A stretch of DNA of 64,000 nucleotides from Octopus sinensis (Eukaryota): assembly GCF_006345805.1 (NCBI RefSeq), contig NC_043002.1:29946001-30010000 (forward strand). The letters run 5' to 3'. Position 1 is the stretch's first letter. Every line of letters starts with the position of its first letter. Made by a program: the position numbers and the translations under genes. The notes beneath the pieces are model-generated. The model was not told the DNA's origin and did no database searches. It was given only the letters and a program-made list of their open reading frames with translations. Below are positions 1,364 through 53,533 of this stretch, piece by piece.

Positions 1364-1520
1364 TATACATTATTTACGTTATTTACATTTGACGGATATT
1401 TGTCCTCATCTTGCTTGTTGTTAACACAACGTTTCGGCTGATATACCCTTCAGCCTTCATCAAGTATCATGGGGAAATGAGAACCTAGGTTCTCAATCCT
1501 AAGGTACTTTCCGATGTTGT
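1364..1520 (-). mobile_element. HHR-bearing tail of tRNA-headed SINE family H1 (inverted arm)
   Basis: Reverse complement of 2351-2510. HHR core is slightly altered (TTGATGA...GAAACGTT) at about 1423-1468. Confidence 0.8.
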
Positions 1521-1614
1521 TGCTGTTGTTGTTGTTGTTGTTGTTGTTATTATTATTATTATTATTATTATTATTATTATTATTATTATTATTATTATTA
1601 TTATTATTATTATT
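1521..1614. repeat. (TTG)n/(TTA)n microsatellite, linker of family H1
   Basis: Direct reading of the sequence. Confidence 0.95.
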
Positions 1615-2060
1615 CAGTAGTTTTATTTTTATAGCGTGCTTTCACTTCATTACCGAGCGCAGCTCTGTGTGCCTTGGGTATGTGCTGTGATTTGTTGTGA
1701 TGCTCTGATGGTTATTGTATGGAAAGTGTTCTGCGTAGGATGTGTGCAGTGCCTAGTAGTGCAATTTTCTGTATGTTATATGTGTTTGTAAGTCCTGGTG
1801 TTTTTGTTATGTATTTGTCTGAATATTTTTTTATCATGCCTAATGCACCTATTATGATAGGAATTGTTTCTGCTTTCAGGTTCCACATTCTAGTTACCTC
1901 TATTTCCAGGTCTTTGTATTTTGAGAGTTTCTCCATTTCTTTTAGAGACACGTTGTCATCTGCCGGTATTGATACATCAATTAGAAAGCATTTTTTTTTC
2001 ATTCATGATCTCTGACAACTATATATCTGGTCTGTTGGCCTTAATTTCTCTATCTGTGTG
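1615..2060 (-). mobile_element. 5'-truncated Dong/R4-like non-LTR retrotransposon: restriction-like endonuclease C-terminus, 3' UTR and (TAA)n tail
   Basis: Minus strand reads HTDREIKANRPDIVVRDH, a frameshift, then KKCFLIDVSIP..KLSKYKDLEIEVTRMW..IPIIIGALG..IQKIALLGTAHILRRTL (RPD-type RLE motif). Flanked by (TAA)n on both sides. The 3' end is nearly identical to 25700-25865. Confidence 0.9.
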
Positions 2061-2155
2061 TATTATTATTATTATTATTATTATTATTATTATTATTATT
2101 ATTATTACTATTATTATTATTATTATTATTATTATTATTATTATTATTATTATTA

Positions 2156-2535
2156 TTCAGGTCACTTCTTGGAATCGAAGCAGTGACCTGAATAGTAATA
2201 ATAATGATAGTAATAATAATAATAATAATAATAATAATAATAATAATAATAATAATAATAATAATAATAATAATAATAGTAATAATAATAATAATAATAA
2301 TAATGATAATAATAATAATAATAATAACAACAACAACAACAATAACAACAACATCGAAAAATACCTTAGGAATGAGATCTAAGGTTCGAAATTCCCCCAA
2401 GACACCTGATGAAGGCTGGAGGGTATATCAGCCGAAACGTTGTGTTAACAACAAACGAGAGGAGGACAAATATCCGTCAAACGTAAATAATGTAAAGAAT
2501 GTACATAATTCCTCATCTCTTAAACATAGAACTGT
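2156..2535 (+). mobile_element. Family H1 element: palindromic tRNA-3'-end junction, (AAT)n linker and HHR tail
   Basis: ttcaggtcact...agtgacctgaa at 2156-2192 matches the 3' part of the tRNA-like head at 4430-4457 in both orientations. The tail matches 4181-4370 and 52989-53150. Confidence 0.8.
2401..2446 (+). ncRNA. Minimal type I hammerhead ribozyme, canonical core
   Basis: GACAC-CTGATGA-A-GGCTG(gagggtatat)CAGCC-GAAAC-GTT-GTGTT. Stem I is GACAC/GTGTT, stem II is GGCTG/CAGCC, stem III is a loopless palindromic ACGT, and the cleavage triplet is GUU. Confidence 0.85.
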
Positions 2536-3122
2536 ATGCTAATATATCCAGTATTTCGCTCGCTTCTCGCTACATTGACTCCCTTAATTTTCATCTCTTG
2601 ATTTATAATGAACGCTGATGAATTTCTCTTTACAAGTGAATATCAATTGATTATAAGTATTATTTTTTAATTAATTTCTTTTTATTATTATTTGGCCTAT
2701 TACATAAAGTATGTTCCTCTTGTCTACCACCCTTGTGCTGATTATTATTTGCGCTGCTAATTTAAAAAAAAAACGCATTGATTACATCTTTCTAATATTG
2801 TGTAGCATTAGAACACACGATTTTACTACTGCATAAAATTGGTGTTTACGATTTCACCACTTTCGGTGGTAGTAATAGTAGTTGTTGACTTTGACTAGGC
2901 ACAGATCAAGCGAAATGAAGCAGAGCTGCAATGAAAATCGTCTGATCGTTTTCATCTAGTGGTTTTAGCAATATCTACGTTATAAAAATTAGCAGAATCG
3001 ATAAAAACGATGTGAAAACTGACTAGCGTTTGTCAGTTGGGTCATGTTATATCATGAGTTCGAAACTTGCCGAGAGTAATTTTGTCTTTCATTGTTCTGG
3101 AGGGCTCGTTGAAGTAGAGTGT

Positions 3123-3541
3123 GGATCTTTTCGGTTTGAACGGCAGTTTTTTCTAGCGGTGTCATATGAAATTGTCACCGATAATTAGGACCCTAGTATC
3201 GATATATTGCATTTCAATCCGTTTTAGGGTTAGGGTTAGGGGTGGGGTAAAGGGTATCTTTTTTCTTCAGAAATGTAAATAAACCCAATCTGTTTCTTAA
3301 ACGAAGGACATTTTCATATAGCAGTGAATATTTTCACCTCAATAGACGTCATTGATTTGTTGAAATAGCAGAAATTGAAGAAAAAAAGAAACAACAAATA
3401 TCTTACAAACTATACAATTTTCTCAACAAGGCCAAGAGAAAAAGATGTTTTATAAACACATTCTACCAGTATACGAAGTTTTAAAGTGTTTAGTTACGTG
3501 GAAATTATTTTTAAAAACTGCCGTTCAAACTGAAAAGATCC
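3123..3541. mobile_element. MITE / non-autonomous DNA transposon with 29-bp TIRs and 8-bp TSD
   Basis: TIRs ggatcttttcggtttgaacggcagttttt and aaaaactgccgttcaaactgaaaagatcc. TAGAGTGT is duplicated at 3115-3122 and 3542-3549. Confidence 0.9.
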
Positions 3542-4180
3542 TAGAGTGTCATTGACTTTTGTTGAGGTTTAGGTCCAGCTCTGCCTTTATTGAAAAAATT
3601 CAAATTAAAAGCATTCAAGCCAAGACCGAGACATCTTTCTAAGAGTATGTCTTGGTCTGTATTGATCAAAGTTCTCTTTCATGTCTGGAGACAATACGAT
3701 ATGTTATGAGGGAGATTTGCTTGTAATTTCTATCAATTTTAATCACAGCCTAGACGATTGTTGTAAGTTAACTTCATAAAATACCAATAAATGTTAGGAA
3801 TAATTTTTCAGTTTCGTTGTCAAAACTTCTCCTATTCGGACACTTCCGTACAAGTACCAGGATATTTCAAAGACACATTTAATTAGTTCTTCTGACTTCC
3901 ATGCTCCAGTAATGTCTATAATTTGGCTTCAGATGTAGGCGGTTGATTTGGTCATTTCCCAAGGAAGTTGTTGGTGGCAATGATCATTGTAGGAAAATGT
4001 TGCATATGACTGGATTACTTAACTGCTATTCAACATAATAATAGTACATATAAGCACACACGCACACACACACACACACACACGCAAACACACACACAAG
4101 CACACTGTTATACGTATATTCTGAACTTACATATATGTATGTATCTGTGTGTACATAAATACACACATACACACATATTT

Positions 4181-52322: not shown

Positions 52323-52538
52323 TGGTTTCAAAGTTTGGTACAAGACCAACAATTTCGGTGGAAGGGTTAAGTCAATTAGTGCGACTCCAGTACATAGCTA
52401 GTACTTATTTTATCGACCCCCAAAAGAATGAAAGACTAAGTTGACCTCGGTGGAATTTGAACACCGAACGTAAATACGGTTGAAATGTCAGTAAGCATTT
52501 TGCCCGGCGTGCTAACGAATCTGCCAGCTCGCCGCCTC
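52323..52538 (-). mobile_element. SINE family B, monomer
   Basis: Minus-strand head gaggcggcgagctggcagattcgttagc. Confidence 0.85.
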
Positions 52539-52555
52539 ATCAAAATTTACAAACT

Positions 52556-52900
52556 AATAACACTTTAGTACAAAGAAACAAGAAACAAAATGATAAGAAA
52601 GATAAAGAAAGTAAAGACAAAGGAAGAGGTAAAGCAGCAGAAGACGTAGTGGGAGGGAGCTATGGACCACACACCCCTCAACAAATAGTGTGCTCAGCCA
52701 CCACCCGCGGTAATGACAGGTATGGCGTTGCTGCGGAGAACGGCCTGCGACACTCGCTACAGCAGCCACTTCACCTCGCGTGGTTCATTTCTTTGAAGGG
52801 CCGCCGTTATCCATATTTTGTGGTGGAAATCTGTAATAAGGACTCCTAGAACACCTGACAACCCGATGGCAACCAGTACAAACTGATAGCGGCCGGCCAA
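52556..52900 (-). pseudogene. 3' end of a CRE-like non-LTR retrotransposon (RLE C-terminus and 3' UTR)
   Basis: GVLG..EPREVKWLL*RVSQAVLRSNAI resembles the CRE-clade terminus E..WL.QR.S.A..RGNA. Confidence 0.6.
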
Positions 52901-52988
52901 GCTTCAACATTTATTGATTTTTCTCTCCTCTGCCTACATTATACTGAACTACAAAACACTCCTTTTTATATATATATTTAAAAGATGG

Positions 52989-53150
52989 GGAATTATGTAC
53001 ATTATTTACATTATTTACAATGACGGATATTTGTCTTCATCTTTTTTTTCGTTAACACAACGTTTCGGCTGATATACCCTCCAGTTTTCATCAGAGGTCT
53101 TGGGGAAACTTCGAACCTGGGTTCTCGTTCCTAAGGTATTTTTCGATGTT
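52989..53150 (-). mobile_element. Family H1 HHR tail, with the ribozyme at 53054-53099
   Basis: Minus strand reads CTGATGA-aaactggagggtatatcagcc-GAAACGTT-GTGTT. Homologous to 2351-2520. Confidence 0.85.
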
Positions 53151-53246
53151 ATAATAATAATAATAATAATAATAATAATAATAATAATGATAATAATAAT
53201 AATGATATTTTATAGGATTGAGGTAACTCCTCCTGTAGGTATACAG

Positions 53247-53533
53247 AAGCAAAAATAATTAAAAAAAATCGAAGGGTGCCATTGTTATCAAGTGAACGAT
53301 AGATACTTCGGCATCTAGCGTGCCTTCAACAGGTTAAAGAAATAAACTTGTCAATTTACTTCATTTTTGGTAATATTTTATAGGATTTTATAGGATTGAG
53401 ATACCCAATCCTATAAAATATTACCGAAGTGAATTAGATTGACATGTTTAGTCTTTGAACCTGTGGAAGGCACGCTAGATGCCGAAATATCGTTCACTTG
53501 ATAACAATGGCACTCTTCTTTTTCTTTTGCTTT
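53247..53533. mobile_element. Foldback H6 with HHR-like motifs in both arms
   Basis: gggtgccattgttatcaagtgaacgat..gcgtgccttc pairs with gaaggcacgc..atcgttcacttgataacaatggcactc. Confidence 0.85.
53457..53495 (+). ncRNA. Minimal type I HHR variant (CUGUGGA core)
   Basis: GAAC-CTGTGGA-A-GGCA(cgctaga)TGCC-GAAAT-ATC-GTTC, with a palindromic ATAT stem III. Confidence 0.65.

Follow-up and report, generated by a model that had tools for sequence, protein, structure and literature searches.

Background

It has been known since 2014 that metazoan genomes contain dispersed families of minimal hammerhead ribozymes (HHRs), some of whose motifs are paired on opposite strands at a distance of 100-700 bp (PMC4209133), and the minimal HHRs of Penelope-like elements (PLEs) are the closest match to the motifs reported here. 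PLE insertions are known to contain an inverted, 5'-truncated copy and partial tandems and to prefer microsatellites (Craig et al. 2021, PMC8557442), and a purified PLE protein from Anolis cuts AT-rich DNA, extends both strands and begins reverse transcription internally (2024 Mob DNA, PMC11167929). The Octopus PLEs covered in PMC8557442 are Naiads only, reported to be without canonical HHRs, and in the literature searched we found no published account of minimal HHR motifs in Octopus. Here we analyze a 64-kb stretch of the Octopus sinensis genome (contig NC_043002.1, positions 29,946,001 to 30,010,000; hereafter the window, with positions counted from its first base), for which a prediction made earlier from the sequence alone (the original prediction) had proposed at least six unrelated families of short non-coding elements, each carrying a type I HHR and using PLE enzymes. 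We consider it probable, at roughly two in three, that the window holds old, mostly inactive insertions of short non-coding retroelement families that have a PLE-type minimal HHR in their RNA and were mobilized by PLEs. As scattered metazoan families of this type were published in 2014, they are not overlooked biology; a 2026 preprint arguing that animal retrozymes are PLE derivatives moreover makes the central inference of the original prediction a mainstream one.

Hammerhead motifs in the window

Both strands of the window were searched with a hand-written descriptor modelled on the published minimal HHR of PLEs, which requires an open helix I and a helix II, each of 4 bp or more, a CUGANGA box after which one bulged base is tolerated, GAAA, a helix III formed by a 4-, 6- or 8-nt palindrome and a UH cleavage site; as a control, we used 200 dinucleotide shuffles of the window in 1-kb blocks. 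With no core mismatch, the descriptor found 1 site, as compared to a mean of 0 per shuffle (n = 200); with up to 1 core mismatch it found 5 sites (mean of 0.02 per shuffle), and with up to 2 core mismatches 6 sites (mean of 0.27 per shuffle). These six sites, i.e., 2406(+), 1463(-), 17451(+), 17711(-), 53461(+) and 17033(+), all of which allow three helices with an open helix I to be drawn (0.27 such sites expected), belong to four families (H1, H2, H3 and H6) that show no mutual similarity outside the motif by blastn. Hammerhead-type motifs are a real feature of the window above chance, yet they were over-counted in the original prediction: four of its proposed families are supported, one of them with a canonical core, while two (H4 and H5) are not, and most of the folds that it drew, although drawable as described, have non-consensus cores. 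Its statement that the flanks of the motifs share no sequence holds at blastn sensitivity, and the comparison of motif frequency with shuffled controls, which had been named beforehand as a check, came out in its favor.

A strict regular expression (CUGANGA...GAAA) matched six times in the window, and only two of these matches, 2406(+) and 53094(-), both in H1, lie in a hammerhead context. Additional copies not captured by the descriptor were recognized by BLAST or by eye, i.e., 53094(-), 4216-4381(-) and a 3' half at 4506-4577(+) for H1, the left arm of H2 at 16833-16911(-), the left arm of H6 at approx. 53293-53340(-), and a third copy of H3 at 57627-57664(+). Loosening the descriptor added 40381 (H5) and 62536 at a background of 0.49 matches per shuffle, so that neither site is supported on its own; 62536 was thus rejected as a chance-level match. 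Two further sites that had been listed as degenerate HHRs were also rejected, as helix I cannot be drawn at 38987 and GAAA is missing at 41943.

By-eye inspection showed that H1, H3 and H6 share an unpaired base between A9 and G10.1, a G10.1-C11.1 pair, a short helix I and a palindromic, loop-less 15.2-16.2 segment (ACGU or AUAU). In H2, the extra base after A9 is absent, loop 3 is a palindromic AUAU, helix III is canonical-like (C-AUAU-G), and helix II measures 50 nt. These traits of PLE minimal HHRs emerged from searches of PLEs rather than being imposed on them (Cervera and de la Pena, PMC4209133). The core (C3 U4 G5 A6 N7 G8 A9...G12 A13 A14 A15.1...U16.1 H17) is fully matched at 2406(+) and 53094(-); single deviations are U3 at 1463, C6 and U6 in the left and right arms of H3, respectively, and U6 in the right arm of H6, and the core is not matched in H4 (two inserted bases) or H5 (C4).

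The arms of the H2 foldback differ in their core boxes (CUGAUGA on the left vs. UUGAUAA on the right), i.e., C3-G8 is replaced by U3-A8, a natural covariation that has been documented in schistosome PLEs and in bacteria (PMC4209133; PMC3088659). Between the arms of H3, helix I shows a compensatory change of U-A to C-G (UCUUU/AAAGA vs. UCCUU/AAGGA). Across all arm comparisons, which involve few copies, we counted two compensatory double changes (H3 helix I and the H2 3-8 pair), three wobble-preserving single changes and three disruptive ones. Thermodynamic folding of monomers and homodimers produced helices I and II and did not reproduce the three-way junction; this analysis says nothing on H1, H3 and H6, and it counts against H4.

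Structure of the element families

Coordinates of the families and of the sequences directly associated with them are given in Table 1.

Table 1. Position and properties of hammerhead-bearing and candidate elements in the window
Feature	Position	Strand	Properties
H1 foldback 1, left target-site duplication	1354-1367		TGTATGCTTATATA; 14-nt direct repeat, one mismatch to 2533-2546
H1 foldback 1, left arm	1368-1533	-	87% identical to 2335-2500; descriptor match at 1 mismatch
Nested retrotransposon-like open reading frame, C-terminus and 3' untranslated region	1616-2060	-	Within the internal (AAT)n of H1; not H1 sequence
H1 foldback 1, center	2160-2192	+	23-nt remnant of the 3' end of the "head" plus an 8-nt inverted copy
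H1 foldback 1, right arm	2335-2532	+	Descriptor match at 0 mismatches (0 in 200 shuffles)
H1 foldback 1, right target-site duplication	2533-2546		TGTATGCTAATATA
H1 foldback 2, inverted arm	4186-4381	-	85% identical to 2335-2500; HHR decayed (CUGAAGG ... GGAAC)
H1 "head"	4388-4457	+	GC-rich; RNA polymerase III (Pol III) A box TGGCGTAGTGG; B-box-like GATCGATTCC 38 nt downstream
H1 foldback 2, direct arm	4506-4577	+	3' half of HHR module only; 91% identical to 2424-2491
H2 left arm	16778-16929	-	HHR 16833-16911: CUGAUGA-GAAGA...UCUUC-GAAA-C-AUAU-U-UC
H2 right arm	16990-17155	+	HHR 17028-17110; UUGAUAA box (U3-A8); descriptor match at 2 mismatches
H3 foldback, left target-site duplication	17367-17378		AATCATATATAT; perfect 12-nt direct repeat of 17776-17787
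H3 foldback	17379-17775		Two descriptor matches, 1 mismatch each; (TA)5 at center
H3 foldback, right target-site duplication	17776-17787		Perfect 12-nt match to the left one
H4 partial tandem	39438-39919	-	1.33 copies of a 362-nt monomer, verified piece by piece
H4 inverted single unit	39920-40264	+	Joined head-to-head to the tandem
H5 single-copy hairpin element	40278-40444	+	Between (TA)n tracts; loose descriptor only
H1 solo copy	52965-53150	-	CUGAUGA...GAAA core intact (53063-53094); 87% identical to 2350-2500
H6 foldback	53249-53543		Descriptor match at 1 mismatch; nested in (AAT)n adjoining the solo H1 copy
H3 family, third (solo) copy	57557-57715	+	72% BLAST match; decayed motif 57627-57664 (GUGUCGA box)

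H1 is present in five copies at three loci in the window (blastn). Alignments define a module of approx. 200 nt with a fixed 5' edge at an (AAC/AAT)n tract and a 3' end reading ...TTAAATATAGAAC; in the right arm of the first foldback, this 3' end is fixed by the three-copy alignment and by the target-site duplication. That duplication (TGTATGCT[T/A]ATATA, 14 nt), which is not a microsatellite, encloses the whole foldback. The right arm contains the sole fully canonical minimal HHR (2401-2449; GACAC/CUGAUGA-A-GGCUG..CAGCC-GAAA-CG-UU|GUGUU), while in the left arm (approx. 1417-1470) UUGAUGA (U3) replaces CUGAUGA and the 3' end is approx. 30 nt shorter than that of the right arm. In the solo copy, there are mismatches in helices I and II. 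The second H1 foldback lies in (CA)n.

A separate GC-rich "head" is intact (70 nt) only in the second foldback, where (AAC)n(AAT)n at 4458-4505 comes after it; 23 nt of it lie at the exact center of the first foldback, between (ATT)n and (AAT)n (BLAST matches 4435-4463 of the head to 2153-2178). The occurrence of heads of 70 and 23 nt beside a common module indicates that H1 is best read as head, microsatellite and HHR module, 5'-truncated at varying points. Judged from its sequence, H1 is thus laid out like a short interspersed element (SINE), its head resembling a Pol III promoter and its (AAC/AAT)n tract being internal. The A-box consensus at 4388-4398 is the only match in the window, and 37% of shuffles hold at least one; the combination of A box and B-box-like motif occurred in 0 of 2000 shuffles, for a pattern that was picked after the sequence had been seen. 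Neither ARAGORN nor Rfam called a tRNA in the head. The translated H1 module, used as a protein query, matched only two entries, both from O. bimaculoides, so that H1 also occurs in that species; a metagenome scan with an H1 23-mer yielded no matches.

In the left arm of H2, the core is intact, helix II is the 50-nt hairpin and G16.2 is replaced by U; helix III is intact in the right arm (GAAAC-AUAU-GUC|GAAAG). The two HHR-like motifs of the H3 foldback are 17446-17483(+), with CUGCAGA, and 17679-17716(-), with CUGUGGA, and the solo H3 copy starts at (TA)n with the same terminus as both arms of the foldback. H6 has motifs at 53456-53496(+), with CUGUGGA, and at approx. 53293-53340(-), with CUGUUGA; the copy on the minus strand carries GAAG and a 4-nt insertion.

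In the tandem part of H4, the last 58 nt of a unit are followed by a 21-nt linker, one complete unit, a second copy of the linker and the first approx. 44 nt of a unit, and the outer 3' ends of tandem and inverted unit both stop at CTATTAT, followed by (AT)n. Its HHR-like region at 39667-39720(-) includes helix II, GAAA, a palindromic helix III, GUC and helix I; in the copy at 40052-40100(+), GAAA is replaced by UAA and A9 by G. The 5' core strand (CUGCAUUGA) carries two extra bases, and the minimum-energy structure is a plain long hairpin in which this strand pairs with AAUGCG. Because of this non-canonical 5' core strand and of the plain hairpin, H4 (39667/40052) was not confirmed as an HHR. 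The core region of H4 is hypervariable between arms that are otherwise near-identical.

At its apex (40377-40414), H5 allows an HHR with a U4C core and 3-bp helices II and III to be drawn; it was not confirmed as an HHR, as a descriptor loose enough to catch it is at chance level (0.49 per shuffle) and Rfam finds no hammerhead in it. A CCGACGA box (C4) occurs at two otherwise unrelated loci approx. 1.4 kb apart, i.e., 38975-39020(-) and 40381-40387(+), the first of which is without helix I. H4, H5 and a copy of a SINE-like repeat are packed one after the other into a single (TA)n region (39340-40460).

Insertion architecture and mobilization

In H1 (twice), H2, H4 and H6, the copies are inverted head-to-head, with the 3' ends of the HHR-sense strands pointing outward. 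This agrees with the polarity in the original prediction, which was outward for the pairs at 2401, 16833/17028, 39667/40052 and 53457 and inward for 17446/17680 (H3). Target-site duplications surround entire foldbacks in the first H1 pair (14 nt) and in H3 (12 nt). H3, H4 and H5 lie in (TA)n, H6 in (AAT)n and the second H1 pair in (CA)n, and the partial tandem of H4 together with its inverted unit has the pseudo-long terminal repeat and inverted-copy arrangement of PLEs.

From this architecture and the literature, we infer that the mobilizing partner was a PLE. An autonomous PLE elsewhere in the genome would supply reverse transcriptase and GIY-YIG endonuclease, and the endonuclease would cut both strands of an AT-rich or microsatellite target. 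Each cut end would then prime reverse transcription on the element RNA, often from an internal site, and two 5'-truncated cDNAs would join in the middle. The expected product is a pair of head-to-head inverted copies with outward 3' ends, sometimes with a partial tandem, inside a target-site duplication of 12-14 nt. As helix III is merely a 4-8-nt palindrome, the ribozyme would form only when two sense copies pair; once formed, it would trim multimeric or read-through transcripts.

Neighboring repeats and other foldbacks

Retrotransposon-like open reading frame (ORF) fragments are found at 1616-2060(-), 15300-16560(+), 25230-25864(+) and 26100-27100(+). A C-terminal domain that occurs among them (...KYKDLEIEVTRMWNLK..IPIIIGALG...) is widely conserved, with 644 metazoan relatives, and belongs to no Pfam family; among the 644 metazoan homologues of the ORF at 1616-2060(-), the best named ones are from O. 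bimaculoides (75-86% identity). Two fragment copies end in a shared 168-nt 3' untranslated region followed by (AAT)n, i.e., bases 1616-1783 are 98% identical to 25697-25864, which likewise ends in (AAT)n.

A SINE-like repeat of approx. 370-400 bp with (CA)n inside it is present in approximately eight copies, which share 71-82% identity and are located at 4830-5231, 7639-7747, 8659-9066, 14187-14566, 21416-21813, 40460-40830, 57708-58060 and 59889-60017. Two of them directly adjoin HHR elements, namely H5 and the third H3 copy.

Five further non-microsatellite foldbacks in the window are without a supported HHR (5294-5733, 8514-8642, 23797-23954, 38830-39308 and 48230-48344). The one at 5294-5733 lies between (TA)n tracts, a (TA)n tract comes after each of those at 48230-48344 and 38830-39308, and 38830-39308 contains the rejected site 38987. 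These foldbacks might be derivatives of HHR-less (Naiad-type) PLEs or miniature inverted-repeat transposable elements (MITEs).

Discussion

Several of our results weigh against mobilization of ribozyme-bearing families by PLEs, and they concern the ribozyme itself, the search for PLE enzymes and the structure of single families. A canonical core with intact helices is found at 2406(+) alone, i.e., in 1 of about 14 copies. Position 6 is U or C instead of A in 5 of 5 copies of H3 and H6, and A6 is normally required for hammerhead activity. A6C and U4C are rare natural hammerhead variants with low activity (PMC3088659; PMC7151607), and we found no report of an A6U variant. The excess of compensatory double changes over the neutral expectation is marginal (P of about 0.05 by our own estimate). 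H4 is the youngest family (arms 98% identical), yet it has the least hammerhead-like core; between its arms, 39499-39840(-) and 39920-40262(+), four of the five internal differences fall within the 38-nt HHR-like core (including A9/G, GAAA/UAA and C15.2/U), a clustering for which we estimate P at about 0.005.

Rfam returned zero hammerhead matches in the whole window at the gathering score, and hammerhead was also absent at E ≤ 10 from five short slices, including those around H1, H2 and H5. With the whole window at E ≤ 10, neither a hammerhead nor a tRNA was among the best 150 of 367 matches, which were microsatellite or hairpin look-alikes of microRNA families (mir-297, mir-466, mir-3149); such false matches flood the permissive search because microsatellites (period ≤ 12) make up 20.5% of the window. 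A loop-less helix III would be expected to escape covariance models built on HHRs with a helix III hairpin; as H5 does have such a hairpin, the Rfam result weighs against H5. The elements would be missed not only by ORF-based annotation, as had been stated, but also by Rfam-based pipelines. The microsatellite setting emphasized in the original prediction is real in the sense of adjacency, but, given the same microsatellite content, such adjacency is weak evidence taken alone. Of the 11 foldbacks in the window that are not microsatellites, 4-5 are without an HHR motif.

Pfam detected neither an RVT_1 nor a GIY-YIG domain in the ORFs at 6711, 7186 and 37932 or among the 84 ORFs of at least 55 amino acids in the window that are not of low complexity. 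The PLE ORF remnants that had been placed at 6711 and 38160 thus have no Pfam support, and, with no reverse transcriptase or GIY-YIG remnant in the window, the link to PLEs rests on architecture and literature. The idea of non-autonomous ribozyme retroelements using PLE enzymes stands with respect to the non-coding minimal-HHR families and their PLE-like insertion architecture, and lacks a PLE partner in the window.

H3 departs from the other families in the inward polarity of its HHR-sense strands. Its constant terminus (3 of 3 copies) is on the 5' side of the HHR sense while the other end varies, a poor fit with target-primed reverse transcription of the HHR-sense strand; judged from these termini, the mobilized H3 RNA may be antisense to the hammerhead-like motif. 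Finally, a non-PLE partner is made possible by fragments of retrotransposon-like ORFs that terminate in (AAT)n and are located within or beside H1 and H2.

It is unlikely, in our judgment, that the families are SINE-like elements moved by such a non-PLE retrotransposon (e.g., the microsatellite-tailed ORF elements), with the hammerhead as a passenger or processing signal, as in the Sm-alpha and Sj-alpha retroposons of schistosomes. HHR-bearing SINE-like retroposons are indeed known in Schistosoma (PMC6765202), and in H1 an A box and a B-box-like motif stand, correctly spaced, upstream of the microsatellite and the HHR module; the head was, however, not recognized as a tRNA by ARAGORN or Rfam and was seen in H1 only. 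The (AAT)n in which the ORF fragments at 1616-2060 and approx. 25300-25864 end is also internal to H1, and the similar fragment at 15300-16560 lies directly upstream of H2. Against this, the microsatellite of H1 lies inside the element and does not form a 3' tail, and the ORF element copy at approx. 25864 has no HHR module after its (AAT)n tail, so that the module is not part of the element represented by 1616-2060, and we rejected it as the 3' end of that element. Head-to-head inversion and partial tandems are, moreover, typical of PLEs (PMC8557442).

Strict non-LTR retrozymes, in which tandem units are transcribed, cleaved by their HHRs and circularized and the circular RNA is copied by a borrowed reverse transcriptase, provide a still less probable account. 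With 1.33 copies of its 362-nt monomer, H4 is longer than one unit and contains the unit junction more than once, which needs a multimeric or circular template, its monomer falls inside the published range of 170-400 nt (PMC7229834), and the 2026 preprint derives animal retrozymes from the terminal repeats of PLEs. Direct tandems of 170-400-nt units, each bounded by an HHR, are nevertheless not what the window contains: only H4 exceeds a unit, with one HHR-like region per strand, a non-canonical core and unit boundaries away from the predicted cleavage site, and there is no locus at which two direct HHR copies bound a unit, as H1, H2, H3 and H6 are inverted pairs. The motifs are also minimal HHRs and lack the loop-loop contacts that retrozyme HHRs have.

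That the foldbacks are DNA elements (MITE-like) or palindromic duplications at microsatellites, with a fortuitous or relic likeness to hammerheads, would fit with the 4-5 foldbacks of similar size, several of them in (TA)n, that lack an HHR motif, with motifs that are mostly off the consensus core and in no case matched by Rfam, and with the similar divergence of the arms of four foldbacks (73-78% identity in global alignments counting end gaps and indels, or 84-87% in BLAST local alignments), but is highly improbable in view of the large excess of motifs over shuffles, recurring in unrelated sequences with all PLE-specific traits, of target-site duplications of 12-14 nt and variable 5' truncation, which suggest reverse transcription rather than cut-and-paste, and of the H4 partial tandem, which is hard to derive from a DNA transposon.

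Under the preferred reading, i.e., PLE-mobilized families with minimal HHRs, the window extends the known distribution of Penelope-type minimal hammerheads by a cephalopod example and represents an element kind that is already known, not a new system. Its insertion structures are also clean and can be dated, and they agree with the both-strand priming that has recently been proposed for PLE integration; among them are the target-site duplications that enclose entire foldbacks and the H4 tandem with its inverted unit, both ends of which stop at the same microhomology. The H4 core and the U or C at position 6 are relevant to the question of whether mobilization requires ribozyme cleavage; one in vitro study suggests that it does not (PMC11167929). 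We regard as doubtful a more far-reaching proposal, namely that the non-consensus cores are working, lineage-specific hammerhead variants, H1 then being the first cephalopod Pol III SINE with a dimer-dependent ribozyme behind an internal microsatellite. In its favor are the presence of U or C at position 6 in 5 of 5 copies of the unrelated families H3 and H6 and the recurrence of CCGACGA at 40381 and 38987; variants of this kind might act with the help of a protein or prefer another metal ion.

Comparison with known systems

As in the Schistosoma retroposons Sm-alpha and Sj-alpha, a Pol III-type promoter region is followed by an HHR in a short dispersed repeat, a likeness that applies to H1 only. 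Unlike these retroposons, H1 has a microsatellite between head and HHR, its HHR is of the dimer-dependent minimal type, and the head is unconfirmed as tRNA-like. The metazoan non-LTR retrozymes (Cervera & de la Pena 2020, PMC7229834) are similarly non-autonomous, low-GC units of a few hundred nucleotides with a type I HHR; PLEs have been proposed as their partner, and H4 is likewise above unit length. Retrozymes form direct tandem arrays with canonical HHRs, whereas the elements described here are mainly inverted pairs with minimal, mostly non-consensus HHRs.

With PLE insertions (PMC8557442, PMC11167929), the window shares head-to-head copies with outward 3' ends (H1, H2, H4, H6), the H4 partial tandem, (TA)n or AT-rich targets and variable 3' start points that are consistent with internal initiation; its elements differ in being non-coding and 150-400 nt long, and H3 has the opposite polarity. 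The closest match is with the minimal HHRs of PLEs (PMC4209133). Our motifs differ from these in that no PLE ORF is linked to them in the window, helix II of H2 measures 50 nt, position 6 is U or C in two families and position 4 is C in one candidate. The likeness extends to the type I topology, the short palindromic helix III, the extra base after A9, G10.1-C11.1, the short helix I and the U3-A8 covariant, and to the presence, within one genome, of many unrelated families, mostly as single motifs or as pairs on opposite strands.

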